NCBI GenBank assembly: GCA_001949185.1
Contig: BDGG01000006.1
Coordinates: 1,098,827-1,162,826 of the forward strand
Reading direction: 5' to 3'
DNA: 64,000 bases
From: Ramazzottius varieornatus
Lineage: Eukaryota > Animalia > Tardigrada
The notes below the pieces were generated by a model. That model saw nothing but the letters and a program-made list of their open reading frames with translations, was not told where the DNA came from and ran no database searches. The position numbers were made by a program, and so were the translations under genes. Shown here in pieces: positions 7,279-32,174 of this stretch. The stretch's first letter is position 1. Each line of letters opens with the position of its first letter.

Positions 7279-7284
7279 TGATAA

Positions 7285-7345
7285 TTGATGTAATTTAAGT
7301 GTAAAATATTGTATTGTGGTTACAAAAATGGCTTCCCAATTAATA
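7285..7345 (+). tRNA. trnH: mt tRNA-His copy (in NUMT)
   Basis: Anticodon arm TTGTA-TTGTGGT-TACAA (GTG) between nad4 and nad5. Confidence 0.7.
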
Positions 7346-8885: not shown

Positions 8886-8946
8886 TTAAGTAGCTTATAT
8901 TAAAGCTTAGATTTGAAGAGTCTAATAAAAGTAATTTTCTTTTACA
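8884..8946 (+). tRNA. trnF: mt tRNA-Phe copy (in NUMT)
   Basis: Anticodon arm TTAGA-TTTGAAGAG-TCTAA (GAA) directly after nad5. Confidence 0.7.
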
Positions 8947-8949
8947 AAA

Positions 8950-9244
8950 TAAAGCCTTTGGCATTTTATAATGAAATTATAATATGTTATTTTACATTAT
9001 CTATTCTAAGAATTTTCGTGATATGCTCAATTATAAAATTAGCGGCTTTAAATTTTAAATTCTTTAAATTAAAGTTTTCTTATGATTTTAGTTAACGTCT
9101 AAACACTGTTTCAATCTCAGTTTATAATAAATATGGATTAAAGAATCAAAAAGTAGGTCGAAACTACTGATATGTTATTTTTGGGTGAGGCCACTGACAA
9201 TTTTTAATTGCAATTAAAATTTTATTATTCTAAATACACTCTCA
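8950..9244 (-). tRNA. mt tRNA cluster Ala-Arg-Asn-Ser1-Glu copies (in NUMT)
   Basis: Minus-strand anticodon loops TGC (~9210), TCG (~9160), GTT (~9095), GCT (~9042) and TTC (~8983), in the canonical A-R-N-S1-E order. Confidence 0.72.
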
Positions 9245-9585
9245 TGATCACTCTAGAACACCTTGTTGTCATTCAAAAATTAAACCCCCGAACAACAAAG
9301 TGAAAAATGATCAGTTAATTAGTGTTCTTGTTTTAATATAAAGACTTTCTTCTACTATCGGGCTTGGAAGAATCACAGCAATTTCGATATCAAAAACTAA
9401 AAAGATTACTGTAATAGTAAAGAACCGTAAGGAGAACGCTATTCGGTTGGTGTGGTTGGAGTCAAACCCACATTCAAAATTTCTTATCTTTTCTTGTCAT
9501 TTACTTCGATTCTGGGTTTTTAATAAATGGAGCAGGACTATACGAAAAATAATAATTGTAATAAGGTTAAATATTGGTATTAAAA
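9245..9585 (-). pseudogene. nad3: Mitochondrial NADH dehydrogenase subunit 3 (in NUMT)
   Basis: FECGFD...FSLRFF...FLVFDIEIAVILP on the minus strand. Confidence 0.88.
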
Positions 9586-9587
9586 TT

Positions 9588-9648
9588 ACACTATTCAGTA
9601 AAAACTTTTTGATTGGAAATCAAATATACTAAATATTAAAAGTGTAAA
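9588..9648 (-). tRNA. trnG: mt tRNA-Gly copy (in NUMT)
   Basis: Minus-strand anticodon arm TTTGA-TTTCCAA-TCAAA (TCC) between cox3 and nad3. Confidence 0.68.
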
Positions 9649-9649
9649 A

Positions 9650-10093
9650 ACATCATTAATATGGAAAACTATACAGAGATAACCACACCACGTCAACGAA
9701 ATGCCAATATCAGATAGCGGCTTCTAAACCTAAGTGATGGTTGAGAGAGTATATGTTCATGTTATGTCGTACCAATACCACTAATAAAAACATTGTCCCC
9801 ACTAATACGTGTAGCCCATGAAATCCAGTTGCTAAAAAGAAGGTTCTCCCAAATCTTGAGTCTCTGAGTGAATAAGATGATTCCCAGTATTCTCAACCTT
9901 GAAGGCTGGTAAAATATGAACCCATAATAACTGTAATTAATATATTTATTTTTGTAACTTTGTTGTTTTGTTCAATCAAGCCATGGTGGGCTCAAGTTAC
10001 AAAACTCCCTCTTGCGAGTAAAACGGAGGTATCTAAAAGCGGAACTTGGAAAGGGTTAATTGCTGCAACCCCTAAAGGGGGTCATGTTAGTCC
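9650..10093 (-). pseudogene. cox3: Mitochondrial cytochrome c oxidase subunit 3, 3' part (in NUMT)
   Basis: WPPLGV..INPFQVPLL, TWAHHG, FFLATGFHGLHV and AAIWYWHFVDVVWL motifs; truncated by the N gap. Confidence 0.92.
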
Positions 10094-10199
10094 ANNNNNN
10101 NNNNNNNNNNNNNNNNNNNNNNNNNNNNNNNNNNNNNNNNNNNNGCCAATAATAAGGCCAGGCTCGTGTACTCCTTCGGCGTAAATTCCCACTTTTAAG

Positions 10200-11240
10200 A
10201 CAGAAATTAATCCAACTGAACGGTGCTGGTTAAAAACCCAACTGACTCAGTGTAACTCGAAACATCCAAATGATTTTTCGGGTAAAGGGCGCAATAAAAA
10301 TGGTTTGCTGCAATGCCCTTCTGTCGTGTCAAGTCAACCCGTCTTCCCCTTAATTTATCCTTAAGGTCAGGAAAGACTGGTCCGATGTCACCGATGACTA
10401 ACATGAATGTGGGGAGGTCGTCCGTTTGTGCAGTATGACTGCGTCTGTCTCATCAGAGTGTGAAGAAACTGTCGGTCACAGAGGTCTGCTGAATTTGAGT
10501 GTCGCCCGAGTTCATCATCTCGCAGTTTGATAGGCGGACATACGGAGTCTTGTATGCCGAGCGACCGAGATTAGGTCGCTCTTGGTATTGCAGCTACGAG
10601 TGCCTGTAACGTTGTCTGAGTCGCGGTAACAAGACATCAGCTCCAGGTATCGCTTACCCTGCTCCAGCGCCGTGATCTGAAAGCTTCGCAAATACATGTC
10701 CACCTGCCTTGTCATTTTTATTACTCTATTCTTCTTACTCTATCAAATGTCAGTACGTTTTCTTTCTCGACTGCAAGAAAAAGGTAGGCACCTCACGCGG
10801 CAAATCTGGGAGAGCTGGGTATAATCTTCAAGCTTCGAGAAGGGAGGACCAGGTTGGGAAATATACTGGGTGATGGACCATTAAGTAAGTCGCTACCGGC
10901 CAGCTTTCTCCCAAACAACTTTGAAACCTGTGAAGGGATAAATGAATTGTGGGCAAGCATATTGTTTATCTCGTCGAAGTCTATCGAATGGGGGGGGGGG
11001 GGGANNNNNNNNNNNNNNNNNNNNNNNNNNNNNNNNNNNNNNNNNNNNNNNNNNTGGGGGGGGGGGGGGAGGGGTAGGTTTACCGAATGTCTCGATAGTC
11101 GAAATTTCGGTAAAAACCGGAATGATCTTGGACGATCAGGCTTAAATTTGTTAAAAAGGCACAACGACGGTAACCAGCAGATCGCAAGTACCACCTCTGT
11201 GTGACTGCGATATTTGACATACGCATGTGTGGCGCTCAAG
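10200..11240 (-). mobile_element. Possible highly decayed Penelope-like retroelement fragments
   Basis: Weak resemblance only: RPRSFRFLPKF (cf. PLE P.FYGLPK), DEINNMLAHNSFIP (cf. PLE C-terminal helix) and FPDLKDKL. Spans an N gap. Confidence 0.25.
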
Positions 11241-13824
11241 TCGCTAACGTCCTTCTGTGGACAGGAACCATGCGTGCAGGGTGGTTCTTTGTTATCGGTC
11301 TAAGCTTTGCACGAGCCACGTCAAGGCTCCTGCGGAGTTTGGCATGTCGCTTCGGCGTACGAAGTCACCGCCGTCCCCGGGACTTCATATCGGCAGTTGA
11401 ATGCCAGTTCCAGCTTGGTGCCAGCTTCGATTGTTTTCAATGATTACCATCTTTCAACATGGCCGTTCATCCGTGGTAGTCCAGTTTTCCACGTCGCAGT
11501 TAGGCATGCAGCAGAACTTGATCGAGTTCCATGCGATGGGCATCAACACCGACTCTACCACCCGAAAATTCCATGATATATCCGCCCTGCCGCTCATGAA
11601 CGTCCCGGCTTTCAAGCCTGGGGACTCTCGGGATGACGTCTCCTCGATGTTCGACTAACTTAAAATAAAAACTAATTCCACAGGAATTTCTTCTTTTTCT
11701 CCGCTTGATCAACTCTTTCATCCTTTTGACCTTTTTGGAGGCGTTCCAGGTTGAGGCAGGGCGACGGACAAGGTACCGACCAAACCCTCAGTTTACTGCC
11801 GTGGTTAGTCCAGGCTTTTCTGCCGTCCATCTCGTCTTCCGGTATCGTCCACAGGGCGAAGGACGCAGTGAACGACCAATTTGGTATGCCATTGTATGGT
11901 GAAAGTCGTATCATACATATCCATCTCTTGATGATCGATTTCTGTTCTGGAAAGTAACGATTGGCAGAGCTGTCGGTCTTTAAACGTGAGGGACAGTTTG
12001 ACCTGTGTCGTGCTGCAAAGGTTTTCTACAAAGGGCAAAATGCCCAAGAATATCGGCTCAAGATATAGGGCAGTCGCCTCCGTAGAACTCCCGATGAACA
12101 CCTCGATACAAAGTTTTACGTCCGGTAGCGAGGAATATTTATTTAGACGTCAATCTAAATTGATAGAATAAAAGGACTCGGCAAACTCGGTCAAGCTGTA
12201 ATTTCCCTACACCAACTCACACGTCAGTATCCCCCCCGCACTTCCTGTCGGTCAAATGTCCAGTAACCTCGCACCACAAAGCTTCCTGCACTCCAATAAA
12301 TTAGGCAAAGGCCTCACCTGTACTTCACACCGCTAGCTACCTGTAAATCTTACGACTTACCTCGCTTCGGTCTACAGATAGGAAGAAGTCCTCGAAGATC
12401 CGACGTTAGTCCCTTTTGAAGAGGCTACTGGCCGAATCCTGGATACCTTATCCTACTGTCCGCGGGTGCAGTGCTACCTGATTAGTTGAAGGTCGCCGAA
12501 GGTCCTTGGAGGCACTTAGCCTTGTTAGAGAGGAAAGACAGATGAAACCGTTGAGAAAAACGGGAGGGAACTTAATTCCGCACGAACTCCCACCAAAACT
12601 GAAGACTCCGTCTCTCGGCCAAGACGGCCAACAGCTTCCCCTCACTTCTTCCGCCACCAAACTCTGTGCGAGACGGAAGTACGTACAACACCTAAGCTCA
12701 AGAGCTATCACCAATGAAACCACATGGCTCCTCCCGAAAGAAAGGCATTCGATCTTCGCCCACGAAGGCGTTTAGATGTACTGTAAAGTCGAATTTAAAT
12801 TCCCAACCAAATCTCCTCAACAGTCGAATGTCTCCGGCTGCAGGATTATGCAGGAAGTATGGCCGGGCGGTAACTGCCCGCATTTCGGTACATCGCCGTC
12901 AAAGAAATCCGTTCCGGTCGGCGATTGATCCAGTGAGATCAGCCATGTTTTATCGTGAATAAACACAGTGGCAGCACAATGAAGAAACGCCCTGATACGT
13001 TACTCATGCGCCGTTGGCGAAACCTGTTATCTTGAACACGAGCGCTGTATTGAGTCGCCGACTGGTATTTTGTTCAACAAACGATAAGTAAAACTTTGGA
13101 TCCCTTTGCACTTGCTTCCGTCAGGGACAAGTCAGATTGGCAGGGTTGGCTTCTTGTGTTCATAACCGGACTGCAGATTTAGGGCACGATTCGCAATGTG
13201 CTCTTTCATCGCTACCCGGTGTTCGTACAGTAGAGCAAACTTTTGTGTAACGCACTCTCCTGTTCCGAGATACCTGTCTAGTTCTCTTGATCCTGAGCTC
13301 TATTGTTGATCTTCTGTATTACACGGGTAGGTTTTCACGTATGCATTTCCGATGGAACATTTTAATTCTACGTTTTAATATCACTGTCTAAACGTTCCGA
13401 ATTGAAAGTTTTCTCGTTCGATGATTCCATATCACGACCGGAGAACCTTCCGTTCGGAAACTACGGACGAGAACAACTTCACAACCCAACAACTTCAGGA
13501 GTAACTTGTGTGTACACTTGAAAAACGTAACGTGGAACCGACCTTATCGACTTGCTTTACTGCATGCGATTATGCTCAATTTCGAATTTCTAGTTTCAAA
13601 ATGCAACGACGGACACAATTGCTAGGAGATAGGGTAACTACAAAAGGCTGTGAATACGCGCCAGAGAGCACAGTTAGCACAAAGCGTGAGACAGTCGAGT
13701 TTTGTTGTACCTCTGTATGCTGGTTCTCTTAGAGGCGCCACTGTCGTTTGCTCTAGCAGCTACGCTGAAGTCGCCTTGTTCACCACGCACGTATTGGAAG
13801 GGAATTGCCTGTACCGTTCGCTAT

Positions 13825-14052
13825 AATGGCCGACGCGTCAGCAATCAGAAAGTCATTATAATGTTCACAAAAAGGATGAAAGGGAGATATTACGGGTAAA
13901 GCTTACCGCATTACGGAAGATGGCTTATCGGCTCAATGACAGAATCCATTTTCTGTCTCCTTTGTACAAAGGACAACTGTCTGTCGCTTTTGCATATTTG
14001 TCTCTTGCGTCACCTGCAGGCTAAGTGCCAGACATGCTTCTTTGCGCCGTAC
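13825..14052 (+). repeat. Non-coding block X, direct copy at 22721-22953
   Basis: GAAAGGGAGATATTACGGGTAAAGCTT...GCCAGACATGCTTCTT (~165 bp) is identical in both copies; edges diverged. Confidence 0.9.
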
Positions 14053-16035
14053 TGACACCCAACTTCACGAGATCAACGCATTAAGACGAAAACTAACCTA
14101 ATCAAGGAATTCACATATGCAAAGATGGTCGAGAAACAGAGGCTCTCCGTGAACGAATTCCATAGTGCATACTTGACTCACTATGCGGAAGCGCCATAAC
14201 ACCGAAAACCACATCTCTGGAATGTGAATAGACAGGTTACGGGCCGATGAGCGCAGGCAGAGACGAGCCAGGTTAATCAGAAAATAAAACTCATTGTGGA
14301 CAATGTCGATGAAATTTACTCAAAGAACGGCCATCGCTTTTGATTAGCCTCGAGCGTCGCATTCGCGGTTATAACCTCAGATATCAATAATAGGTTAAGC
14401 CTATCTTTTCGAGACCTTCTGCTCTTTTCATTACAATGTCAGGTCTGCGCTTTGTCACACTCCAAAACCAAGACAGACGTCTCATAAAATACCATTTGTA
14501 CCGCGCTCATACAAATTCGTCCATCTGAATTAAGTAATTCTCGCTGTGCATTTTTAGAGGAAAATCTCTGGACCATGAATAATCAATGGAATTTTAAATC
14601 CAGGTGTAATTAACCTTTCAGACAAGGCTCGATTGACGGGACATACAGAAGCGTAGCCAGAAACGCGTGACGGCAGTTAGCGGCCACCGTCCAGCTTGAC
14701 AACGCTAAGCGTGTCTTTGCTGTACATTCGGTGGTGTCGAAGCGTGACTAGCTGCTCATTTTACAAAGAAGATACACTGGNNNNNNNNNNNNNNNNNNNN
14801 NNNNNNNNNNNNNNNNNNNNNNNNNNNNNNCTCTGTTGGGGATGAATGCGAAGTTTGTACAGGATAATGGCGCTATTTTCAGCCCTTGCTTATCCCGTCA
14901 CACGTCACGATATTCAACTGATTGTGTAACAAGTCCAAGCATAAATATTAGATTTACATGGACCCTTATTCATCAGGACGACACCACCAATTTCCATACT
15001 TTCCACCTCCAGCAGACAACTTCACGAGCAGCGCAGTCCAAAAGTACGCCCTTATTACTGTAGAACAGACCTCGTGAATTGTTCTTTAGGTGCATCGCGT
15101 TTTTGATATCTGGTCGGCAGTACAAACTAAAATTACCGGCAGTTGTGCAGGTACATTGACCCGATGTGTCCAACCCTTACCGGCCAATTTGGTCTGTTTG
15201 TTTTATAAAGAAAATGTTATTTGTGATAGCGGGAAAACCAATTGAGTTTCGATTGTATTGCTTCTCGACTGAAACAATGGCCTAATAAGGAGAGGAAACA
15301 AATCAGAAAGGCAATTCGTGTTTGGATTTGACACTATTGAAGTGACTGGACATATACCCCAACAACCTCGTAAAGCCAAACCGATTGAGAGATAGGCAAA
15401 TATTCGACAGGCAAAAATCCCCCTCTGATTAACAAAGACATAATTACCGGCCTGACAAGCCGCCATCCGACATACCGGCTGCCAACCTTCAGGCCACTCT
15501 AACGACCGATAACAGAGCTTCGATAACCACACTGTCCATTGACTGCAATATTTTCGTCCGTAACTTTAAAACACTTAGTTTTTAGGTTTTTAAACCTTCC
15601 TGCGGTTCGTGATAAATGTCTTTGAGCAGTACCAACCAACTTATTGTTCTCTGCTTCTCAATCTGCTTTGCGTTCTCCTGCTTTTGAATGAACAAAGCCG
15701 ATTACGCAGTAAAGTAGTATCACACATGAAAGAGCACCCAGGCTGTACGCGAATTCCGCTTTCGCGCATTGTTCACTGTCCTGCTGGCTTAACACGGGCT
15801 AGCTTTGGCGTCCACGGTTTGTGGAATTATTAATGGAATTCGTGCGCTTGGCCTGCTCGCCGTAGATAGCCTGCTGAGCCTCCCGCCAGCGTCATTCCCG
15901 AAAGGGCGTCAGAGCTTGGGAAGACGAGGTGGGCGTTCCCCCTTTTCTGCTGTCAAACTGAAAGCAGCCCAAGCTGCAAGCTCCACCCGCTCCCCTCTCC
16001 CTTTTTACAGGTTGCGGCACGCTTGCCAAATTGGC

Positions 16036-16070
16036 TATAAAAGCAAAGCGCGCGATGCTTGCCACGCGAC
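16036..16070 (+). promoter_or_regulatory. TATA box and class-C (CACGCG) bHLH-repressor-type site of neurogenin copy 1
   Basis: GGCTATAAAAGC...GCCACGCGACCACTTCAAC ~190 bp upstream of the ATG; conserved in the otherwise diverged promoter of copy 2 (27226-27285, minus). Confidence 0.6.
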
Positions 16071-16226
16071 CACTTCAACTTGACGAATAAATCCGACGCT
16101 CGAAGCCCATTTCCTTGTCGTTCGCATCGGATCTTTTCTGCCACCATTGTCTTGTGATTGGACTATCTCAGGCATTTCGTCTCTTGATCTCCTTATTTTT
16201 CTGCGGAGTACGATATTTAACACAGG

Positions 16227-16949
16227 ATGGCCGAATTTTCAAGTCAGGTACGCTCCGCGGAATCAAGCCCGTCGCATTTTGCCAAGGCTACCACGCCCAT
16301 GTCACCAACCGAACTTCCCTCCAAAGCACCGACGATTAAAAAGACCAAGCGTTACAGTCGTCCACGCGTTCGATGTCGCAGTCCTACGGTTATCCAGCGT
16401 CTGAAGAAGACTCGTCGCGTCAAAGCCAACGATCGCGAGCGGAACCGAATGCACAGCCTGAACCACGCTCTGGAAAAGTTACGGGTTGTCCTGCCCGCGT
16501 CGTCCTTCCCGGAAGAGTCCACCAAGCTGACCAAGATCGAGACGCTACGCTTCGCCTACAACTACATTTGGGTGTTGACGGAGACCCTGAAGATGAACGG
16601 TAAGATGCAAGAGTACGAAGCGGCCGGACTGCCCAACCCACTGCCCACCCACCACAACCTGGCCAGTGGACACTTTACGGACGCCGAAGTCAAGAACGAG
16701 AGCCACCTTGTGGATTATTCCAGCTGGATAGCTAGTCCGGACAACACAACAGCGTCCTCAGTGTCGGGCTTCGAGTCCAACTCGGACGAGAGCTTCATGA
16801 ATCTGGATGGATCCTTTGGCTGTGCGGACCAGCTCGGCGCATTTCCGATGGATATGAACCAGCCCTTTTTTCAGCCGAGTAACCTTTTTTGCGATGAGAA
16901 TAATGTGCCTTCCTTTCAGCCGTACATCAGTGCGCCTTTCCCCATGTGA
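16227..16949 (+). CDS. ngn: Neurogenin/tap-family proneural bHLH transcription factor, copy 1 (single exon, 240 aa)
   Basis: [40 protein letters not shown]...[23 protein letters not shown] is a neurogenin-type basic region and HLH. Confidence 0.93.
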
Positions 16950-19900
16950 GAACTTCATAATTTACTTTCTGTAGCATGATCGCAGTTTTGCCTTGTTTCA
17001 AATAACCCGTCCAGCAACCCGCACTTGTGCGGCTATGAGGCAGCAAATGTGTTCAGAGCTTTTGCACATTGTTACTGGCTCCATGTAAAATCATTCGTAC
17101 GGACTAAAGTGTACAAAGTATACGGTAGCAAATATTCCCATTTGTAACACTCACAGCCCAACTTAGACCCGTCTTTCGCATTGCAAATCAATTCCGAAGC
17201 GCGTCAGTTTTCTGACTAGAGGCGGAACACTGGTGAGGGAATGAATAGGAAATCTTTCTAACCCACTGATCTCGCGCGTGGCCGGTGAAGTATCCCTGAA
17301 TACAGACCGGGGAACAATAGGCCCGCTCGCCATGTGGTCGCCGCCATCTTGATACAGTACAGGCTTCGCCACATCTCAATACAAAATTTTATCAAAACCA
17401 ATGCTTTTATAACTTTCTATTCGGCAGTTCCATCTATCGTTGGCTGGTGCACAACCTGTTACATTTCCACTCCGCCACCTGTGCCTCAATCTATCCCTCT
17501 GGACTTCCTCTTTCCTCCCTTTTAGTCAACTCTAATCTGGACGCAGTAAAATCAACGCTACAAAGTCTGGCTAATAACCACAGACCGCGTCCAAAGTCAC
17601 CTGCCGAACCATCCAGCAAATCCAACGTTCAATTCCGCCATTTAGATTTGATTCCTGTTTATGCTTTCCCTCTTGTTCTCTCCCACATTTTCCTGCGGAA
17701 TGTGGCGCGGGCTTATCAGGTAATCTAACACCCGTCAATCGTGACGGACCATGTCCATTCACCAGTAATCAAAAGCGAGACCGAAGACGCAAGTGACACC
17801 GACTGCATTCAGCAGGTCGACGAAGCTTCTTATCAGATTCCCCAATAAATCTCATTGGCTTTTAATTGTTGTTAATTGACTTCCGGCATTTCGGTGGTGC
17901 ACGTCATTTAGAGACAAAAAATCCCTAGGACCCGTGATAGTGATCGTCGTAAATGGGCTTATGTACTCTACTTTATTGAATGAGGCAATTAGTGGCAGAC
18001 AAGCAATAAATCTTACTCTGTCGGACCAAAGCTTCGAATTATCCACCAGACCCCGTGCACAAAAATCAAAACTGACACTGGGTTCGGCAGCTGGACATTC
18101 GGGGTAGATTCGGCCTCCAATGTATCATCATTCAGTAAACCGCTGACAGCGGCTTGGGCCTTCATCTGCTGAACGAACGGCGGACTACGAGAAGTTGATT
18201 ATTGTTCTTGAAATGGGGTGATCAAACCGTGATGCAAGAAGAGAAACAAGAATGACACGCTGTAGCATTACATGGGGGGATAGCTTAATTAAAGAGAAGA
18301 AAATGACGCTCGCGTCTTGTGTCAGAATAACAAGCTGCACGCGAATGACAAAATAATCACTGCTGTGGACGGAATATTACATTTTGAACCTGTCGACTGG
18401 TTAATTTAGTAAAATATGAGCACTTCCCCGAGGAGCGTCTGCTGTAATGTGCAGTGTGTCTAAATGCTGCCCCTTTGGTTTTCGTCGATGTTGGGTACAT
18501 GGCTGCGAATTTATCGTGTATTGTACATGCCACAAACTAGACCCTTTCTGAACTTTGCTTCTGAGGGAAGAGCTCATGGTTTTTGCCCCAAAATAACGGC
18601 AGACAGAAAGACTAGGCTTGAAGATTGATGAGTACAAACAATAGTGAAAAAGCCGAAGCGGAGTTGAACTGTGTGGTATTTCTTCCATTCGAGTGATTAC
18701 AGTGTCTCAATCAGCGGAGACACAGAAAATGAAGTGCAGTTTAATTTTATGCACTGATCAGGGTAGCAATTAGTGCTGAGCCGCCCTCATTAACCTCAAT
18801 AACCTCTCCTGGAATAAATGGAGATAGGCAATGGACGACGGCCGGCGCTACACTGAACTCGTCCTCTTATGATTGTCGCACCGTGTCTTGAAGCTTTTTG
18901 ACGATTGCTCAGGCGAGTGAAAATCATTTCATCACAGATTAATGACAGAGAATGGAAAGTGTGCATATGATTAACAATGCAAACTGGGCCTTGTTCCTCT
19001 ATTGCCCACCTGCTCCATACTCGGCACACGGGTATATATGGCCTTAAAGTATCTTTGGTGTCCTTGTGTTGGGCACTGCTTATATCTCGGCCGTCATGCG
19101 ATTGCGTTGATTGCAAATACGAAGGACTCAAAGGCAGTCGGCCGATCGAAGTGTGCCTTCCATCCAGCAAAATCAACATTCACTTCATCCAGCCCTAAAA
19201 CCATAAACTTTGATCCATGGCTCTCATGCAATCGTCATCACTGCAATCGACGACTTGAAGCATACCCGTGCCTGGCTTCTTCCTGCGAAAGGTCTGACTA
19301 AGCCTGCATTTCGTCATGTTCTCCTCTTATGATTTTCCGAAGCTTTTTTCTCTGGAAAGACCGCATCGAATACTTTTCACCATTGTTTCGAAGTATCTTC
19401 TTAGCGCATTGACTCTTGTCCTGTGGTGGCCGACCATTGTCCGTCTGCGGCATTATTGCTGGCTAATCTGAGCGTGTTATCTCCCGCCTGGTCAAAACAT
19501 GACGCAACTGGCGATTCCCCTCTGCAGTGTAATGCCACCAACAGGGAAGCGCGCCGCTCTTTTGTTTGCTCTGCCTCTTGAACCAGACAAGGACCATCTT
19601 CTCCTTTCGCTCCTTACGCAATGTAATGGATTGCTTCACTGGTCCGGAATTACCCATTTCAACGCAATGATAATTACGGCTGCGGACAAAAGAGCTACCT
19701 TTCACTTGCGAGCCTCGAGTTGTGTATCAAGTAGACGACGACAGACGGTGCTTGTTACAAGGTGTTTCATTTCGCTCGTCTGTCCTCCGTAACTTCCTTC
19801 AATCAGCTCAAGTGGACAATGGTCAGCGCTGTCCTGAAGAAACCTCTTTGCGGCAAGACAGAAGACGGTTTCCAAGGATACTCTCCTCCCAGTTTACCTC

Positions 19901-20279
19901 GACTCTTCATTCCAAAATGAATCGGCTTACAAGCTGGTTGTTAAACAAGACATAACAATCATTGCCGTCAACGCTCTATTTATCCGTTTGTAGTCCTCCA
20001 ATCAGTCTACGTCAACCGAAGCAAAGCATTTCATTCGAACAGCTATAAACGAAAGAATTCACTCAGAGGCGAGCAAACATTCGTGAAATCCAATCCAGTT
20101 TTCCGCGGAAATTAAGCAGGATAACCGAACAACGACATATATCCTCGTGAAACTCCGCTGTACTATCAATATCAAATTGACATGATGTGTTACAAAAAGC
20201 ACTGAAAAAGCTTGCATGAAGTCACAGGCAAACTGCCAAATTCAGAAGCGCGACTTACGTAGTTGCTGATACTGAATTT

Positions 20280-20440
20280 CCAAATTTTCAGCCCATTAAG
20301 CAGCGCTTTGACAGTGAAGAACTCCAGCCGTCAAGTGGACACAAGCCGAAGGGCATTATCAAACCATTAGCCGTCTATGCAAATACAAAATGGGCAATGC
20401 ATGACTGCAATTTCAAAATGGTACTTCATATTCGTCAACT
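20280..20440 (+). repeat. Non-coding block Y, direct copy at 29600-29765
   Basis: GCCCATTAAGCAG.GCTTTGACAGT...AAACCATTAGCCGTCT.TGCAAATACAAAATGGGCAATGCATG.CTGCAAT.TCAAAATGGT is shared; moderately diverged. Confidence 0.85.
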
Positions 20441-22720
20441 GACACCAAAATCAGTGAAAAGAGCGTGATTGCGACGTCCGAGCTTCTACGTAGCCTGAAC
20501 TCGAGAAAGAACCGCCGAAGGGCTTCTGAGATTTCGTTCGCTTCCAGACTGTCGGCTTCCGAAGCGGCGCCAACGTCGCTGTTGTGCTGACGATGCGCTC
20601 TCCGTCACCCGGTAACACAACGAACACAACAGGGGAAATATCGAAACGATCCCTGCGCAACCCGATTAGACCACTCGACGCCAGCATTGAAAGTACTTTT
20701 CTTGGTCATATCCGTTATTCACCCTGCCTTTTTCCATCATTTTGTGTGTTGAACGCTGGGATGTACTTTAATATTCACGGCCTTCAGCCATGTTGCTTCT
20801 TCCTCGTGGCCCATGGGTTTTTGCACTTGCGTTCAAACCCGCTACCATATCTTGAAATCTCATACCTCGGCTTGCAATAATGGTTGGTATTAAATGGTTA
20901 TCAGCCTCATTTGTGAAGTTAAGGAAAAGCTATTCGCAAGCTGCTAATAAGCGATTGCACAATGTTGAAAGTGCATCCCTTCCGGGGCATAGCTTACAGT
21001 TCACCAAACCAATCAAAACATTGCACCGGAAGGGATGCACTTTCAACACTGTAGTATTGCAACGAAACCGCATTCACTCCATTCCAGTGATGGCTTTTCG
21101 GACGGTCTCCTGCGCAGCGACCGATCTTTCTTGTGGGATTACCGCAAATCGGTCCCCAACCATCAGCCGTGTGATGCCTTGTTTTTCAAGTACCGATTGA
21201 AACTGTCGGCCTGGGGATGCCCAGACAGAAGTGATCGTGCCATTTTTATCCATATTATAACTTTCTTGCAAAGACTTTACTGCGGTCTCAAGTCAATAAA
21301 AAACTACTCCGGCCCGTTGTCGCTCATCTTTTGCTCATTTTGAGTCTATATCGCACCCCATTCGCAGTAAGATGCGCAATAACTACATATGACTCAAAGA
21401 GAGATACCGCGCCGAAGAGATTGCATCACGCGCAGAGCATCTTGCGGGAAGTTTAGCACCTCGTAAGCTTATGGGAAAAAGGATGAGTCTCTGTGCAAAG
21501 TTACCAAATAATTTTTGTTTCTAACGCTTTTTCCCGCCAGAGTTTTGTAATTGAGGGGGGGGGGAGTTCAGAGCTTGGCATGTCCAATCAGACTATCGAC
21601 GCGCCTCCACTAAAGTCGCGCTGATAACCCTGTCTTGATATGGCTGTAAAATCATACGCACCGTCAGTTTGAAGGCTTTTCCCATCTCAAAACCTGAGAT
21701 TTCTGTTTTAAGGACAAACGCCGACACTGTGTTGCGACCTAAGTAAATATGTAGGCTGATACTCACAATTTCTAAACTTTGAACCAGACATGATACTCGA
21801 TTTTGGACACTAAATTACTCTTCCGAAGGGGAATTCGCGCAGTCGAGGATTGTCATTACGAGGGGCGAAATTCCTTTTTCGGAAACGGTGGTCAGAACGT
21901 CGACCTGCAGCCTGGTGAGCTCTGTGATTACTTTGCTGCTAAATGACACCCAGGTTTATGGAAATCTTAGCTTTTAATGGATAACTGTCGCCAGCAGTTT
22001 GTTGCTGGGAAACAAACCAAACTTCCTGTTGGTTTACTCTAGCTCGATCGAAACTTGAATCATCACTCGATTCACGCTTTCCAGCTGTCTCCCATCCAAA
22101 GCTGTAGTCCCCACAGACAATGCGAAAAACTGAGATAAATGATGGAAAATTGACATGAAAAAGAGTCCGCAAAGACGATTATATACAGTGGCTCCTTGAG
22201 CGGTGTCTTCTTCTGGTACGGTTCAGCAGTGTCTTATAGTATAACGTCTCAGAAGCGGAGTTGGGTTGCGGACCAAACTATGCACAGCTTTCGTAAGAGT
22301 GGAATGATCCAGAAATTAATTTCATTTAAATCTCCAACACCCGCGACCGCCTCTCGCGAGAATACCCGCTCCAGCATCCAGCACGAGACTGCATATCGTG
22401 AGCCTGTTGCTGCTCACCTCCGCTGGCCGCGCCTGGTGAATTTATCCGGCTTGATCAGGCATCTTTTGAAAATGAGCCGCTCGGAAGAATGTCTCACATT
22501 ACGCAATTACTGTCCACTTTGTTCTTTGTTTCATCACAAGTTAACGAAGCTAGTATACAACCGCTGTGAAATTTATATCGAGTCTTCTTCTCACATCGGT
22601 TTGAACTTGGTCCTTGCAGGCGAAGAAGTTTCGAAAATTTCGATGTCGATCACTGATTTCTTAGCGCCGAAGAATGGAACTACTGTGGTTTTCTCGGACG
22701 GACAATGATGCAAGGCTCCG

Positions 22721-22953
22721 TAATGGCTGACGCGTCAGCAATCAGCAAGTCATTATAATGTCAACGGAATGGGTGAAAGGGAGATATTACGGGTAAAGCT
22801 TACCGCATTACGGAAGATGGCTTATCGGCTCAATGACAGAATCCATTTTCTGTCTCCTTTGTACAAAGGACAACTGTCTGTCGCTTTTGCATATTTGTCT
22901 CTTGCGTCACCTGCAGGCTAAGTGCCAGACATGCTTCTTCACGCCTTACTGAC
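22721..22953 (+). repeat. Non-coding block X', direct copy of 13825-14052
   Basis: See block X. Confidence 0.9.
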
Positions 22954-23279
22954 GTCGAACTTCGCGGGACTCACGGACCGACTCGAGGGTCCTTACAGGC
23001 TTCACACAGACAGTTGTACCTAAACTGCCACCGAGGACATCAAGTGTAGACCCGGATAAACCATCTACATATTCAACTGCAAGCCTCCTCACAAAAACAT
23101 GTTAGGTGCGTACTCCTTTACTGCACACCTAAATCAGAATGTTGATCGGATTTCAGGTTTGTTTGCACTACCGGCATTCAATGGATTATTTTCATTGTGA
23201 CTGCTTGATGAAATATTTTCCTTTACTCAGTTGTTCCGACCAAGGAATTCAAAACAGGAGGAACGAGTCAATACAACAG

Positions 23280-26200
23280 CGATTGTAATGTCTTGTTTAA
23301 CAATCAGCTTGTAAGCCGATTCATTTTGGAATGAAGAGTCGAGGTAAACTGGGAGGGGAGTATCCTTGGAAACCGTCTTCTGTCTTGCCGCAAAGAGGTT
23401 TCTTCAGGACAGCGCTGACCATTGTCCACTTGAGCTGATTGAAGGAAGTTACGGAGGACAGACGAGCGAAATGAAACACCTTGTAACAAGCACCGTCTGT
23501 CGTCGTCTACTTGATACACAACTCGAGGCTCGCAAGTGAAAGGTAGCTCTTTTGTCCGCAGCCGTAATTATCATTGCGTTGAAATGGGTAATTCCGGACC
23601 AGTGAAGCAATCCATTACATTGCGTAAGGAGCGAAAGGAGAAGATGGTCCTTGTCTGGTTCAAGAGGCAGAGCAAACAAAAGAGCGGCGCGCTTCCCTGT
23701 TGGTGGCATTACACTGCAGAGGGGAATCGCCAGTTGCGTCATGTTTTGACCAGGCGGGAGATAACACGCTCAGATTAGCCAGCAATAATGCCGCAGACGG
23801 ACAATGGTCGGCCACCACAGGACAAGAGTCAATGCGCTAAGAAGATACCCCGAAACAATGGCGGAAAATACAATATTCGGTCTCTTCTGCGCAACAAATG
23901 TATTGCAGTTTTAGGTTAAGAGAACCAACTTGAGCGTGATCATGGTCCAACAAAACCTTCAATTTCAGAAGGAACATGCTTTGGGCCCTGGCACGCTTTG
24001 AATTCTCGATTGCGGTACTGCCGATAGATAACAAGGACAATGGTTTAAAGTTTATTCTTTTAGTACTGGATGAAGTCGCTGTTGATTTTGCTTGATGAAT
24101 GCCAAGTTATCCTGTCGGTCGCTCCGTCTCCGGCTAGTCATATTCGTGTTCAGTGCAACTGACGGCCGAGCAAAGCTCGAGTGCGATAGCAGTGACTGAA
24201 AAGTGCATACAGTACACGCTATGGATATTTTAAGGCGATATGCACGTGTGTTGAGTGCTGAGCAGGTGGGCAATAGAGGAACAAGGCCCAGTTTGCATTG
24301 TTAATCATATGCACACTTTCCATTCTCTGTCATTAATCTGTGATGAAATGATTTTCACTCGCCTGAGCAATCGTCAAAAAGCTTCAAGACACGGTGCGAC
24401 AATCATAAGAGGACGAGTTCAGTGTAGCGCCGGCCGTCGTCCATTGCCTATCTCCATTTATTCCAGGAGAGGTTATTGAGGTTAATGAGGGCGGCTCAGC
24501 ACTAATTGCTACCCTGATCAGTGCATAAAATTAAACTGCACTTCATTTTCTGTGTCTCCGCTGATTGAGACACTGTAATCACTCGAATGGAAGAAATACC
24601 ACACAGTTCAACTCCGCTTCGGCTTTTTCACTATTGTTTGTACTCATCAATCTTCAAGCCTAGTCTTTATGTCCACCATTTTTCCTGGTGATTGACGATG
24701 ACCTCTTCTCCTACGAACAAAAGTCGAAAGGTGCATGTGTTATTTTTTTAGTCCACCATACCATAAATCTGCAGCCATGTAGCCGACAAGGACGAAAACA
24801 AAACTATCGTGCAGTGTAAGCACACACCGCATATTACAGCAGACGTTCGAGAAGGAAGTGCTCTTCCTGTGAAACTGACAAGTTGACAGGTACTAAACGC
24901 AACATTTTGTCCAATGTAGTGATTAGCATGTCCTTTGGTTCAAGCCTGTAATTTTGACGTAAGACGCGAGCGTATCATTTGCTCTGTAATTTAGCCATCT
25001 CCTCATATAACGCTACAGCGCATCATCCTTGTTTTCCCTCTTTGCGTCATGACATCTCAAGAAGGGTAATTAACATGTCTCACTCTGCCTCCCAGCTGCA
25101 GGTAAAGACGCATGCGGCTGTCAACGATCTACTTAAGCATGACACATCAAGAAATAAATCTAGCTTAAATATTCAGCTAACCTAGCCATACGAATACTAA
25201 TGTGTAGTACGAAGTCTATTTTTTGTGCCAGTAATGAGGAGGCGATCGCAGCAAGTCCGACCAAGGCTCTGTGGCCGGTCCTTGCCCGACAGAGGAAGTT
25301 TTATTGCCCGTCTGCCAATGATTGCCTCATTCAGTAGAGTGAGCCCATTCGATGCGATCACTATCACGGGTCGTGAAAAAAAATTTTCTATCTGAACAGA
25401 CGTGCGCTACCGAAATACCGAAAGTCAATTAACGACAATTAAAGACCAATGAGGGTTAATGGGGTATCTGATAAGAAGCTTCGTCGACCTGCTGAATGCA
25501 GTCGGTGTTACTTGCGTCTTCGGTCTCGCTTTTGATTACTGGTGAATGGACATGGTCCGTCACGATTGACGGGTGTTAGATTACCTGATAAGCCCGCGCC
25601 ACATTCCGCGGGAATATCTGGGGAAGAAGAACGGGGGAAATCTGAAGAGGAATCAGAGCTAAATGTGAAAGATGAATGGAGCATTTGCTGGCTGGTTCAG
25701 CAGGTGATTTTCGACTCGTTCTTTCATCTCTCAGCCAGATTTGGCAAGCGCCAATTTTACTACGTCCAGATTAGAGTTGACTAAAGGGTATGAAAAAGGG
25801 AGTCCAGAGGGATAGTATACAGTGAGGCACAGGTGGCGGAGTGGAAATGTGACAGGTTGTGCACTAGCAAACGATATCGATGGAACAGAATGGAAAGTTA
25901 TAAAAGCCTTGCCTCTGATAAAAATTCATATTGAGATGTGGCGAAGCCTGCAGTGTATCAAGATGGCCCTGACCACATGGCGAGCGGGCCTATTGTTCCT
26001 CAGTTTGTGTTCAGGAATATGGCACGGGCTACGCGCCAGATCACTGGGTTAAAAAGACTCCCTTTTCTGTCCCTCCTCTTGTTCCGCCTTTACTTCAAAA
26101 TTCACGCCTCGGGTTTAAGTTTCTACATGCGACAGACGGATCAGTTGATCGAACTGCGAGTTTTTGGAATTCACAGCAGATTATATATTTCTCGAAGTGT

Positions 26201-29200
26201 AATGTCCGTTTACTGCGCATGAGAAATTTGATTTGCAGCCGAAAATCATATTCAGAGATCCCGAAAAAGTCAGATTGTAAAGCACTGCGCAAATGTGTTT
26301 GATGAACGGGTATGCCTATAACAAGATCAAACACTTCAGTCCGTTTTCTCACATGGAAAAAGGCATGTACGGCTGATAAAAAGGCACATTGTTCGCGTCG
26401 TAAGGAAGAATACTCTGTTGGGAAAAAGGCTGGCTCATATCCATGGGGAATGTGCTGAGCTGGTCCGGAAAGGGAAATATTCCATCCAGATTCATGAAGC
26501 TCTCGTCCGAGTTGGACTCGAAGCCCGACACTGAGGACGCTGTTGTGTTGTCCGGACTAGCTATCCAGCTGGAATAATCCACAAGGTGGCTCTCGTTCTT
26601 GACTTCGGCGTCCGTAAAGTGTCCACTGGCCAGGTTGTGGTGGGTGGGCAGTGGGTTGGGCAGTCCGGCCGCTTCGTACTCTTGCATCTTACCGTTCATC
26701 TTCAGGGTCTCCGTCAACACCCAAATGTAGTTGTAGGCGAAGCGTAGCGTCTCGATCTTGGTCAGCTTGGTGGACTCTTCCGGGAAGGACGACGCGGGCA
26801 GGACAACCCGTAACTTTTCCAGAGCGTGGTTCAGGCTGTGCATTCGGTTCCGCTCGCGATCGTTGGCTTTGACGCGACGAGTCTTCTTCAGACGCTGGAT
26901 AACCGTAGGACTGCGACATCGAACGCGTGGACGACTGTAACGCTTGGTCTTCTTCGCCGCCGGAGTTTCAGAGGATGGTTCCATGGCTGACATGGGCGTG
27001 GAACCTGTCAGAGTATGTGGAAGACCCGTTTCTGCCGCTGATAAATCACTCGAATATTCAGCCATGCTGGAAAGACGGTAGTCCACACAGCGATAGGCAA
27101 ATAGATATACAAAAATCTCAAGATACAGTAGTCAAGTGACGCAAAGACTGGGAGGATGCGGTGCGGACGACGGGGATAATACAGTAAGGTGAAGTCAGCT
27201 AGCGCCTTCCAGATTTGTTCGTCAGGTTGAAGTGGTCGCGTGGCGTTTACATGACAGGCATCGCGCGCGCTTGGCTTTTATAGCCACTTTAGCAAGCGTG
27301 GAAGGTATTATGGATTTCCGTAAGTACAAGTACGGAAAAGGAAAGGCGGAAAGCAGCCTGTAAAGGGGAAGAGGCGAGCGGGTTGAAAGGTGGAGCTTTT
27401 GCCGCTTGTGGTGCTTTCACTCAGTGAGCAGAAATGGACATGAAATAAGGGGACGCCCACCTCGTTGTCTGCCCAGCCTTGACGCCCGTTCGGAAAGGGA
27501 GTTAGCGGGACTCTCCACAGGCTGTCTCCAGCGAGCAAGCCAAGCGCACGGATCCTATTAATAATTCCGCAAAAATGTGCACGCCAAAGTAAAGCTGGTC
27601 AAGGCTACGCCAGGAGAACAACACACAATGAGCGAGGCATGCAGTGTGCTTCCCGGTGCTCTTTCAAGTGCCACACTACCCGACCCGAGTGTGTAGGTTT
27701 ATGTCTGCCATCACTCGTAATCGCCTTTGGTCATTCATAAAGCCAAAGAGTGTAAAGCCGATTGAGCTATACATATTAAATATTAAAGGGATAATCTGTA
27801 GTACTTTTCAAAACTTACGGGTTTATTGCAATTCCTTAGGAAAGTACCAGCAGCTGAGTCTGCGAGAGCTGCGGTCAAAAAATAATGCAGTTAATAATGA
27901 AAAAGGATTGTTTGAGTTGTTTATCGAAGCTCTGTTATCGGTCATTGGAGTGGCCTGAAGGTTGGCAGCCGGTATGTCGGATGGCGGCTTGTCAGGCCGG
28001 TAATTATGTCTTTGTTAATCAGAGGGGGATTTTTGCCTGTCGAATATTTGCCTATCTCTCAATCGGTTTGGCTTTACGAGGTTGTTGGGGTATATGTCCA
28101 GTCACTTCAATAGTGTCAAATCCAAACACGAATTGCCTTTCTGATTTGTTTCCTCTCCTTATTAGGCCATTGTTTCAGTCGAGAAGCAATACAATCGAAA
28201 CTCAATTGGTTTTCCCGCTATCACAAATAACATTTTCTTTATAAAACAAACAGACCAAATTGGCCGGTAAGGGTTGGACACATCGGGTCAATGTACCTGC
28301 ACAACTGCCGGTAATTTTAGTTTGTACTGCCGACCAGATATCAAAAACGCGATGCACCTAAAGAACAATTCACGAGGTCTGTTCTACAGTAATAAGGGCG
28401 TACTTTTGGACTGCGCTGCTCGTGAAGTTGTCTGCTGGAGGTGGAAAGTATGGAAATTGGTGGTGTCGTCCTGATGAATAAGGGTCCATGTAAATCTAAT
28501 ATTTATGCTTGGACTTGTTACACAATCAGTTGAATATCGTGACGTGTGACGGGATAAGCAAGGGCTGAAAATAGCGCCATTATCCTGTACAAACTTCGCA
28601 TTCATCCCCAACAGAGCCAAAGTGCAGTAAGGATGGCGTGTGGTTGTCGACCGATTTATGTAATTCTTCCGTCACGCACCGCAGTCACTATCAAAACAGC
28701 GGTCGGCATGTCGCGCTCTTCTTCGGACCATACGTCTATTTTGTTCTGCATTACCTGCGGGACACAGACAATAGAGCACCGTTTAACCCCGACATCGGCC
28801 AGTGTATCTTCTTTGTAAAATGAGCAGCTAGTCACGCTTCGACACCACCGAATGTACAGCAAAGACACGCTTAGCGTTGTCAAGCTGGACGGTGGCCGCT
28901 AACTGCCGTCACGCGTTTCTGGCTACGCTTCTGTATGTCCCGTCAATCGAGCCTTGTCTGAAAGGTTAATTACACCTGGATTTAAAATTCCATTGATTAT
29001 TCATGGTCCAGAGATTTTCCTCTAAAAATGCACAGCGAGAATTACTTAATTCAGATGGACGAATTTGTATGAGCGCGGTACAAATGGTATTTTATGAGAC
29101 GTCTGTCTTGGTTTTGGAGTGTGACAAAGCGCAGACCTGACATTGTAATGAAAAGAGCAGAAGGTCTCGAAAAGATAGGCTTAACCTATTATCTGAGGTT

Positions 29201-29355
29201 ATAACCGCGAATGCGACGCTCGAGGCTAATCAAAAGCGATGGCCGTTCTTTGAGTAAATTTCATCGACATTGTCCACAATGAGTTTTATTTTCTGATTAA
29301 CCTGGCTCGTCTCTGCCTGCGCCCATCGAAGCGTGATCCGTCTATTCACTCTCCA
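23280..29355 (-). repeat. Right arm of inverted segmental duplication
   Basis: Reverse complement of 14215-19965, with alternating identical and diverged blocks. Confidence 0.95.
26349..27065 (-). CDS. ngn: Neurogenin/tap-family bHLH, copy 2 (238 aa from ATG 27065)
   Basis: Same bHLH as copy 1. MAEYSS aligns with MAEFSS of copy 1, so ATG 27065 is preferred over the GTG at 27086. N- and C-terminal tails diverged but in frame. Confidence 0.93.
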
Positions 29356-29599
29356 TTTTCCATAACGTAGAATTCAGCGATTTCGCGATGTTTGAAAATG
29401 CGGCAAACCTTTCAGACCGACGGGGAAGTGGAAAGCAGCAGATGGAGTGACAGGCGTATGTTGAATCTGACTCGAACTGATGTGCGCGGTTCTGATATTT
29501 TCGCGCAGTATGCTGTAGCTTCAACCAGCACTCAATGTTTTGCTGAACAGGGAGAATGGTGGAAAAGGCCTAGATAGCGTTTTCGAATCAGTGATTTGC

Positions 29600-29765
29600 A
29601 CAATATTTCGGCCCATTAAGCAGTGCTTTGACAGTTCAGAACTTTTGCCCTCAAGTGGATGGACACAGGCCGAAAGACATCATGAAACCATTAGCCGTCT
29701 GTGCAAATACAAAATGGGCAATGCATGGCTGCAATATCAAAATGGTTCTTCACATTCATCAACCC
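29600..29765 (+). repeat. Non-coding block Y', direct copy of 20280-20440
   Basis: See block Y. Confidence 0.85.
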
Positions 29766-30287
29766 ATACCGACTTCGGGCACAGAAGTATCGCCTTCCAT
29801 TCGACAACCGAAATTCAAAACCTCTGGTTATCGGTGGCCACAGTAGCCGACAAGGAAAAACTGTACGTGTTTGTATGATAGTTTAATGGTATTAGGTGCA
29901 AAGCAAAAGCAGCTCATCTTGTTCGTGAGAAAATAACAGAAGCAAAAAAAACCACTTCGGAATGCAGAGACGTTCTACCACTGCCTACACGTTCTACGAT
30001 ACGCTAGGTATGTAGGCCTAAAGGTCCCGGAGGTGCATGCTCGACAGATCTTACAAACATATGTTGGCTCGTAAATGGACGATCTTGCTACGTTATTTGG
30101 TTGTCTTTGCCTTCACACAAGAGCTGACAACATAAGCCACGTTCTGCGCGCTGGGACATGCTATCTTTTCCGCCTCGCAGTACTCTTTTGTGCTAGCTAC
30201 AGGAGAAGAAAAAACATTCATAAAGATTTGTACAATCGATTTTACAGACCAAGTACCTTGCAATGATGAAGAACAATAAGTTCAAAT

Positions 30288-32174
30288 TCAAGTGTCATTA
30301 CCCATAATTTTGTCGAAAATAGGGCTGGCTTCTCCCTGGATGATTTTATGGAACGTGAAGCCGGCTTTGGACATGATCTCTGGCCATTCTTTACGGTCCA
30401 TTACTTTCTGGATTTCGCTCTGGACAAACACTTCCCATTTCCGACGCGCATCGCTGCCAGATTTCGCCTCCAGCCCCTGCTTCTGGACGCCCTTTTGAAC
30501 AACGGCAGCTGCTCCAGCCGACGCATCTTTACCCACCAACGGAGGCAACCTACCTACTTTGTAAGCCAGCTAAAAAAGACACCGAATTCTACTGTTCCGA
30601 TCTACTGTAAGTCACAAATATTTATTTCCAACTGAAATAAAAATAATATTGTGTTCTGAATGAAATAGATATCAAAGTTCGGCTTCCTTACCTCGATTCG
30701 TTTCGTGGCTGGTGTTCCGCCACCATCCGTACTATCTACTCCGGTCTCGAGTTTTCTTTTCTTTGCAATTGTTGGAACCACTCCTGTGTATCCAGCGTGA
30801 GCCAAAGCCTCAGCCACAGAAGGTTCGGCGATCTCAACGCGTTCTCGGTCGTCAGAGGGCGCTCGTCGGACAGCCAGTGGCATTTCATCGTCGGACTCGG
30901 TGCTGCTCTCACCGGCCTTACTTTGGTTTTCCCCAACTTGCACCTTCGGCGCGGCAGCACTTGGTTCCTCTTCCATCGAAGCTTCACCGACCCCATAGCT
31001 GTGCTCCAGCAGCACGTTCGCAGCTATAGCCGGAAGTGAGTTGGGGTGAGCGTTCGGGTGGACAGGTTCGTCACTCTCCGCCACTGCATGTTCGACCGTG
31101 CGGAAAATGTTCTTTGGAAAAGTCAGCTTGATTGGTCCAGATCGACTTCGCGAACGGGTAGCAACTGCCAAAACAGGCGAAAACGATGACAAGACCATAG
31201 CCAAGAACGAAAAAGGGAAATGGGAAACTCGACAAGATTGTCTTCCAAGTGGCGGAAGCTTTCAGTAAAATCGGCTGAAAAGGTGCGCCAGTTGGAAAGC
31301 GATCTCGTCGAGTTTGTCTGCACAGCTCCCAAATAACGTGTCCAAGTATCAATATTGATGGAAACCGGGGCACTTGTCAATGTCCCGCTGCGTAGATATA
31401 CCTCGGCTTTTATATATGTATTCGAATCGATACTTACTCGGAGATTTAACTCGGGTTTCCTTCTCCTCCACGTCTGCCACTTGTTTAGCCTTCCTTGGGC
31501 GTCCGACGTTCTGCGCAGCTGGACTGACATTTATCAAAGACGAGCTAGGTTCCGTTTCGTTCGCGGTAGCCGGGGCGAAGGCGTTGCCTTCGATCTTGGG
31601 AGATCGAACTACACTCTTACGTCCCGCTGGTGGGCGACGTCGACGTGGCGGCGCCGCGAAGGGTGTAGTCTTTCTGGGAACTGGACAGTTCTGCATTATG
31701 GAACGTGGTTCTTCTGGCTGAGTCAAAGCATTCATCAGTTCAGATGACTGTTCGGCCAACGGGACTGACGGATTTGGTGGAAGCGAAGACAGTGACATGT
31801 GCATCGATTCGAATGTGTCGAGAGACTCTTCGCCACTGGCGCTGCCGCTCGTGATGGAGTCTTTGTCGTGGTGGATGTAGGCGAGAACCTCTTCGACCTT
31901 ATCTTTGAGGTAGAGCAGACCCTCGTACAGCGCGGTGACCTTCATGTTGAGAGCGAATGTCTCGGCGTGAAGCGTGGCTAGTTCTTTGCTGGACCCGGAA
32001 GATCCGAAGGCCTCTTCGAGTTTAGCGCGGACGTCCAAGGCCATGCTTGTTGGCTTTCGTATTGCTCCCTGAAAAAAGAACAGCAGAGACACTGCAGCTT
32101 GCGGTGGTTATGTACAATCTGAGCTGTGGAGAAAATTGAGCGAACTTACCCCACTTTTAATAGTCCCCGACATT
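30288..32174 (-). CDS. Uncharacterised multi-exon protein: N-terminal coiled-coil-like helix, disordered Ser/Pro-rich middle with AT-hook-like VGRPRK, helical C-terminus
   Basis: Three long minus-strand ORFs (31349-32092, 30602-31204, 30288-30548) bounded by GT-AG sites; probable first exon MSGTIKSG at ~32149-32174. Confidence 0.62.

Follow-up and report, generated by a model that had tools for sequence, protein, structure and literature searches.

The stretch of DNA analyzed here, called the window throughout, comprises 64,000 nucleotides of the tardigrade Ramazzottius varieornatus (assembly GCA_001949185.1, contig BDGG01000006.1, positions 1,098,827 to 1,162,826); unless stated otherwise, coordinates refer to the window. 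It contains two genes with a basic helix-loop-helix (bHLH) domain, which face each other within two inverted segments. The left gene (L) lies on the plus strand (16227-16949) and encodes 240 amino acids in a single open frame. The right gene (R) lies on the minus strand (26349-27065) and encodes 238 amino acids from the ATG, with an open frame that extends to a GTG at 27086. The Pfam domain HLH (PF00010) is found at amino acids 63-114 of the L protein (E 2e-15) and at amino acids 70-121 of the GTG-started R frame (E 1.6e-15). The closest named relatives of both proteins are mostly neurogenin-1/2/3-like or TAP proteins (E 1e-25 to 1e-29); onychophoran and tardigrade neurogenins are among the named matches, and a few matches have been named NeuroD automatically. 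Judged by these similarities, both genes are classified as neurogenin/Tap-type bHLH genes. The searched genome (55.8 Mb in 200 contigs) holds exactly two genes of this type, and the next bHLH gene is 43% identical (E 3e-12). No paper on tardigrade neurogenin duplicates was found in the literature.

The inverted segments, or cores, measure about 5.9 kb each and span 14218-20095 (L core, plus strand) and 23144-29355 (R core, minus strand, inverted relative to its own flanks), with weak inverted homology reaching to 20095 and 23144. The spacer between them is about 3.05-3.3 kb long. Each core is bordered by short repeats, and these are arranged in direct orientation. D1 (13824-14072, plus strand, 249 bp), the left flank of unit 1, corresponds to D1' (22721-22969, plus strand), the left flank of unit 2, with 94% identity and a Kimura two-parameter distance (K2P) of 0.068. 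D2 (20276-20446, plus strand, about 171 bp), the right flank of unit 1, corresponds to D2' (29594-29770, plus strand), the right flank of unit 2, with 85% identity and a K2P of 0.16. In the whole genome, D1 and D2 occur in two copies each, all of them at the neurogenin locus, and are therefore part of the duplication. The order along the contig is thus D1, forward core, D2, a middle segment of 2.27 kb between the units (20447-22720), D1', reversed core and D2'. The middle segment is single-copy except for a foldback at 20959-21052.

The direct orientation of the flanks around both cores shows that the locus arose by tandem duplication and that one of the two cores was turned around. A simple palindrome, as which the locus had been labeled in the preliminary description, is not borne out: the arms are inverted and separated by a short spacer, as in a classical palindrome, but D1/D1' and D2/D2' are direct, the mirror symmetry stops short of the outer boundaries, and the arms are not near-identical throughout, about half of each being only 68% identical to the other. 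The junction segments between flanks and cores were compared in both orientations, and no remaining homology reached significance (the highest z-score, 4.8, was matched by the best shuffle).

A core that is inverted between direct flanks resembles a heterozygous inversion, and uncollapsed haplotypes troubled early assemblies of another tardigrade (PMC5531438). According to a corresponding model, each haplotype would possess a single neurogenin locus, and the two copies would be very diverged alleles, one of them inverted, that were laid end to end; near-identical stretches would then reflect conversion between alleles or loss of heterozygosity. We regard this as very improbable. Between 14831 and 64000, a range that includes the spacer and the R arm, the sequence is free of N, so that both cores and the spacer form one contiguous stretch. 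The units are separated by the 2.27-kb single-copy segment; the DNA to the left of D1 is not homologous to that left of D1', nor the DNA to the right of D2 to that right of D2'. Furthermore, the non-coding divergence of 32% is far above allelic levels, and mate pairs of 3.5-kb clones and fosmids were used in the assembly (PMC5034306).

Within the cores, five near-identical blocks alternate with strongly diverged intervals. Block 1 (L 14251-15499; R 27948-29322) lies 0.7-2 kb upstream of the ATG and contains an assembly gap in its L copy. It consists of three runs of exact identity, i.e. 14251-14380 against 29322-29193, 14387-14780 against 29192-28799 (394 bp) and 14831-15499 against 28616-27948 (669 bp), with a 6-bp indel at 14381-14386. 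Block 2 (L 16341-16811, plus strand; R 26481-26951) covers codons 39-195 without a difference in 471 bp. Block 3 (L 17695-17838; R 25466-25609) begins about 750 bp past the stop codon and is identical at 143 of 144 positions. Block 4 (L 18607-19015; R 24260-24668) is identical at all 409 positions, and block 5 (L 19393-19936; R 23305-23848), at the inner end of the core, at 543 of 544. The inverted arms and the five blocks are thus located where the preliminary description had placed them. Its bounds for block 1 can be kept in part: the block is present, but exactness ends at 15499, two mismatches follow up to 15533, and the 6-bp indel lies within it.

The blocks are collinear in both arms, range from 144 to about 1,380 bp in length, and together make up about half of each core. 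Over the 2,761 aligned columns of the pooled blocks, two mismatches (both transitions) and the single 6-bp indel are the only differences, which corresponds to a K2P of 0.0007. For the intervals between them, we counted 910 substitutions in 2,858 columns (494 transitions and 416 transversions) and many indels; their identity is 68% and their K2P 0.42. The sharp alternation that had been claimed for the arms is evident when identity is plotted in 50-bp windows: the distribution is bimodal, with 93 windows at 100% and the remainder centered on 60-70%. Some block borders fall from 100% to about 60% within a few bases, while others have short shoulders (15500-15533, 17839-17881, 19937-19960). Windows at 86-98% are border windows, save for one stretch at 17291-17508 (R arm about 25800-26020). 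This stretch, 350-560 bp past the stop codon, is the only one outside the blocks with an identity of 86-94%; it may represent an older conversion tract or a constrained element of the 3' untranslated region (UTR). The longest identical runs measure 1193, 491, 471 and 409 bp, the first of these being the 394- and 669-bp runs merged after the N columns had been dropped. In a GENECONV-type permutation with 2,000 trials, shuffled differences gave runs of at most 77 bp. The blocks are absent elsewhere in the genome. An origin of blocks or flanks from dispersed repeats or transposons was considered as well and is ruled out, since each of them is confined to the neurogenin locus.

The coding sequence (CDS) shows the same contrast. 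In the coding block, synonymous divergence (dS) and nonsynonymous divergence (dN) are both 0 over 157 codons with about 109 synonymous sites; as had been proposed, the identity includes silent sites. Outside the block, the coding tails have drifted: dS is 1.24 and dN 0.43 in the N-terminal tail, and dS is 0.69 and dN 0.22 in the C-terminal tail. The ratio dN/dS of about 0.3 in the tails implies that both genes are under purifying selection. Moreover, the coding block (amino acids 39-195) outruns the bHLH domain (amino acids 63-114) by 81 codons on its C-terminal side.

These 81 codons allow a comparison between species at the protein level. P0004 is the protein of a close relative, 86% identical overall, and P0003 is a more distant one. 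At amino acids 115-195, L and R do not differ at any of the 81 positions, whereas they differ from P0004 at 8 and from P0003 at 29. In the C-terminal tail, by contrast, the copies are as far from each other (17 of 43 positions) as either is from P0004 (L 16 of 45, R 15 of 43). Clustering within the species is therefore seen inside the block and not outside it, which is the pattern that had been predicted for conversion. The site patterns of the C-terminal tail are near balance, two sites joining L with P0004 and one joining R with P0004, and favor neither order of duplication and speciation. Searches with the C-terminal 100 and the N-terminal 80 amino acids yielded only P0004 again and P0121, a distant and uninformative fragment. 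P0004, the closest foreign relative, derives from a Logan contig of 1,900 bp and begins at a methionine that matches amino acid 75, within the bHLH domain; what should precede this methionine is therefore absent from the record, out of frame in it or interrupted. Its C-terminal tail has mostly ancestral residues, while the L and R copies each have changes of their own.

Could purifying selection alone, acting on ultraconserved coding and regulatory blocks, produce this picture with no conversion at all? The bHLH domain does lie within block 2, and the blocks are collinear in both arms and found nowhere else in the genome, which speaks in its favor. Yet about 109 synonymous sites are identical next to tails with a dS of 0.7-1.2, and the 81 block codons beyond the domain vary between species (8/81 and 29/81). 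Block 1, which is non-coding, has no difference across 1.2 kb. The promoters are a further argument. Both genes possess a probable TATA-box core promoter, at 16036-16041 on the plus strand for L (191 bp before the ATG) and at 27277-27282 on the minus strand for R (217 bp before the ATG). These putative functional elements lie outside the blocks and are only about 80% identical, with substitutions; an identity of 100% is therefore more than ordinary constraint produces at this locus. Taken as a whole, the explanation by constraint without conversion is close to refuted. The promoters also qualify the earlier claim of promoter drift: the region is indeed only 67% identical overall, but the TATA core promoter itself is kept in both copies at about 80%.

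A different possibility is that the duplication is young, that the blocks show its true age, and that the intervals were hypermutated or replaced later. The blocks amount to about half of each core and all stand at the same near-zero divergence, as this model would have it. On the other hand, the substitution spectrum of the intervals is ordinary (494 transitions against 416 transversions) and accompanied by many indels, and the dN/dS of about 0.3 in the tails is as expected under long purifying selection. Furthermore, the divergence of D1 and D2 is intermediate, and no third copy exists in the genome that could have served as donor. A young duplication is thus highly improbable, even more so than diverged alleles. 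The non-coding K2P of 0.42 and the tail dS of 0.7-1.2 instead indicate an old duplication, in agreement with the preliminary description.

The quality of the sequence is crucial for claims of identity. The published assembly is based on Sanger reads (PCAP.REP, 3.5-kb clones, fosmid ends and primer walking; no polishing is described), and SOAPdenovo contigs were used only for closing gaps and for resolving problem regions (PMC5034306). Its 199 nuclear scaffolds represent 99.7% of 56.0 Mb, to which the mitochondrial genome is added (PMC5034306). The sole gap of the arms, 50 N at 14781-14830, sits in block 1, the one block that exceeds the length of a Sanger read, about 1.4 kb upstream of the ATG; no reading frame is therefore affected. 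On either side of the gap, the match to the R arm is perfect and collinear (14780 to 28799, 14831 to 28616), and the 50 N therefore represent about 182 bp of ordinary sequence (R arm 28617-28798). The block structure accounts for the presence of a gap at this locus. Three further runs of 50 N are found nearby (3818-3867, 10095-10144 and 11005-11054), and the DNA at 6001-10000 is AT-rich, with a G+C content (GC) of 0.30-0.36 and an AT skew that falls as low as -0.22; assembly was clearly difficult in this region of the scaffold with its N runs.

It has to be considered, then, that the mosaic is real but that its exact identity was inflated by the assembly. According to this explanation, the blocks are truly about 97-99% alike, the homogenizing events are older and rarer than they look, and the two arms received one and the same consensus because a short-read contig was collapsed or reads were misassigned. 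The merging of SOAPdenovo contigs into the Sanger assembly for problem regions (PMC5034306) would have provided the opportunity, and the gap within block 1, the three more gaps within 11 kb and the length of block 1 beyond a Sanger read are in line with it. By contrast, the other four of the five blocks (blocks 2-5, 144-544 bp) are each short enough for a single Sanger read to cross them and be anchored in the diverged DNA on both sides. Copy-specific differences remain in blocks 1, 3 and 5 (two single-base differences and one 6-bp indel), which indicates that the copies were assembled separately and not simply pasted twice from one contig. In addition, when 264 kb of the contig were sampled, other diverged repeats, with 76-88% identity, had no such blocks and shared exact runs of just 25-38 bp. 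We consider inflated identity unlikely, though clearly less so than the models discussed before. Even if it were true, stretches of more than 95% identity with homogenized silent sites inside surroundings of 68% would still need conversion; patching could lift an identity of about 97-99% to 100% in places, but not create near-identity amid 68% surroundings.

In our opinion, it is likely that the five blocks are kept near-identical by recent or ongoing gene conversion between two old copies. Conversion from arm to arm, already suggested in the preliminary description, explains best why silent sites are identical in the blocks and why the relative differs at 8 of 81 positions where the copies differ at none. 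The anatomy of the locus, the statistics of identical runs, the silent-site identity and the contrast between and within species were observed directly. What we infer beyond them is the repair mechanism, the barrier set by divergence, and that conversion is still going on.

The following scenario explains the locus best. Long ago, a segment of about 7 kb with the neurogenin gene of the animal underwent tandem duplication, after which one copy had its 5.9-kb core inverted; the facing genes are now about 3 kb apart. The greater part of the duplicated sequence has since diverged nearly to saturation, with both genes remaining intact under purifying selection, while five collinear stretches would have been overwritten repeatedly, one copy from the other. 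In each such event, a DNA break in one arm may have been repaired from the other arm, with no crossover and in short tracts. Both the onset and the spread of repair would be limited to places of persisting near-identity between the arms, since strand exchange breaks off at mismatches; the likelihood of conversion is known to depend on sequence identity (PMC3924832). Such a process would reinforce itself: converted stretches remain convertible, and stretches that have drifted past the barrier escape permanently. A self-reinforcing barrier would thus generate the bimodal pattern of 100% against about 68% with sharp borders, and would do so with no selection on the blocks. Furthermore, a crossover between inverted copies would flip the intervening DNA and delete no gene, which may have helped the pair to persist.

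Several points weigh against recurrent conversion as we propose it. The blocks have hardly more GC than the intervals (0.47 against 0.46), and the common signature of GC-biased conversion is thus absent. The near-zero divergence of all blocks could stem from a single complex repair in recent times and not from ongoing conversion. A single assembly underlies the exact identity, the copy number and the linkage of each block to both sets of flanks; block 1 is longer than a read and contains a gap in it, and in places the two arms may both have been filled from a collapsed contig. Finally, the comparison between species was made at the protein level only, with two database proteins, one of them partial.

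What is more challenging is the question of whether the blocks have a function. It had been suggested that conversion keeps the DNA-binding core and enhancer-like modules locked together. The first part of this claim does not agree with the position of the coding block, which extends over amino acids 39-195 against 63-114 for the bHLH domain and half of which evolves freely between species; the coding block thus does not follow a functional module. For the non-coding blocks, an Rfam scan gave no match near the gathering score, a Pfam search of the open reading frames in the blocks recovered no family, and RNA folding of block 3 revealed nothing unusual. Proneural E-boxes are not in excess either, with 0.87 per kb in the blocks, compared with 0.76 for the intervals and 0.99 across the entire window. 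The description of the blocks as enhancer-like modules thus finds no counterpart in Rfam or Pfam content, RNA structure or E-box density, and a model without selection fits the blocks equally well. That selection favors the homogenization of the blocks, with a shared central protein segment and shared distal regulatory DNA next to private tails and promoters, seems doubtful to us, about as doubtful as an identity inflated by the assembly. If it were true, selection on conversion tracts would split a developmental regulator into one shared, co-evolving part and two private parts.

Other elements lie in the vicinity. The foldback at 20959-21052 in the middle segment is near-perfect, with a stem of about 31 bp and a predicted energy of -55 kcal/mol (z-score -10.6). 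Further copies of its arms were located at 12 or more sites spread over at least 7 contigs, where they frequently face each other in pairs with a spacing of about 100 bp, and the foldback therefore looks like a small dispersed foldback element, similar to a miniature inverted-repeat transposable element (MITE-like); its microRNA-like Rfam matches are weak and far under the gathering scores. Three short self-complementary stretches to the right of the duplication (31225-31330, 33315-33439 and 34880-34975), mutually 65-77% identical, may constitute another foldback family. Outside the window, at contig positions 1041466-1041856 and 1049599-1049989, two direct repeats of 391 bp lie at a distance of 8.1 kb from each other and have an identity of 96%; possibly, they are the ends of a young element of the long terminal repeat (LTR) type. 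A repeat of about 400 bp at 4369-4785 is 76-88% identical to a site about 12 kb upstream of the window (L018:6660-7060 and 8133-8567), where it forms an inverted pair.

For the species itself, our results mean that it possesses two intact, selected neurogenin genes with an identical central segment, but with differing tails and differing proximal upstream DNA. Copy-specific probes must accordingly target the tails. Trees or datings based on the central part would wrongly show the duplication as brand new.

The arms of Y-chromosome palindromes are near-identical over their full length, which ranges from tens of kilobases to megabases. Unlike these, half of each tardigrade arm stands at 68% identity and the flanks are direct. 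The human palindromes P1-P8 are nonetheless comparable in that inverted arms around a spacer are homogenized by conversion on the same chromosome (PMC8600007).

Closer parallels are found in the palindromic pairs Hsp70Aa/Ab and Amy-p/Amy-d of Drosophila, which evolve in concert by ectopic gene conversion (PMC3924832). Both systems consist of two linked, mirror-image paralogs whose duplication is older than their identity suggests and which are more alike within a species than orthologs are between species. As in Amy, concerted evolution is limited to part of the unit and the flanks evolve independently (PMC3924832); as in Hsp70, a crossover in mirror orientation inverts and does not delete (PMC3924832). 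In contrast to the fly genes, the homogenized DNA of the tardigrade is distributed over five separate blocks, of which four are non-coding; within the CDS, conversion is limited to the middle two thirds, the coding tails having escaped; and homogenized and diverged DNA stand further apart (K 0.0007 against 0.42). The evidence in flies includes shared polymorphism as well.

The genes Dlx-a and Dlx-b of Capitella teleta, which also encode developmental transcription factors, likewise form a closely linked, inverted pair; non-chordates usually have a single copy of this gene (PMC3199776). For these genes, too, GENECONV-type evidence shows conversion over the DNA-binding domain, and GC is not raised in the tracts (PMC3199776). 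The tracts measure 150 bp and 31 bp in Capitella (PMC3199776), compared with 144 to about 1,380 bp in the tardigrade, where they make up about half of each 5.9-kb core. Both pairs are arranged tail-to-tail, but for Capitella there is no description of an inverted core between direct flanks (PMC3199776).

In HMA4, effective conversion rates vary along the duplicated genes and leave a mosaic of divergence (bioRxiv 10.1101/2025.10.29.685298). The mechanism that we propose for the tardigrade corresponds to divergence-threshold models, in which conversion is suppressed past a threshold (Teshima & Innan 2004, cited in bioRxiv 10.1101/2025.10.29.685298). The HMA4 copies are tandem, young and graded, with exons below introns, whereas the tardigrade pair is old, inverted and all-or-nothing. 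For non-coding DNA, the BGW element in the 5'-UTR of the BEX, WEX and GASP genes found in mammals offers a precedent, as it is homogenized by repeated conversion independently of the adjacent CDS and gives rise to chimeric histories within one gene (PMC1274310). Unlike the tardigrade blocks, which exist in two copies and have no G+C signal, BGW has a raised G+C content and is spread over many genes of three families (PMC1274310). In comparison with all these systems, the tardigrade locus represents a known process in a very clean instance, which differs from its precedents in degree and layout and does not constitute a new class of mechanism. It is an unusually clean natural case of the all-or-nothing outcome that divergence-threshold models predict, in coding and non-coding DNA alike.

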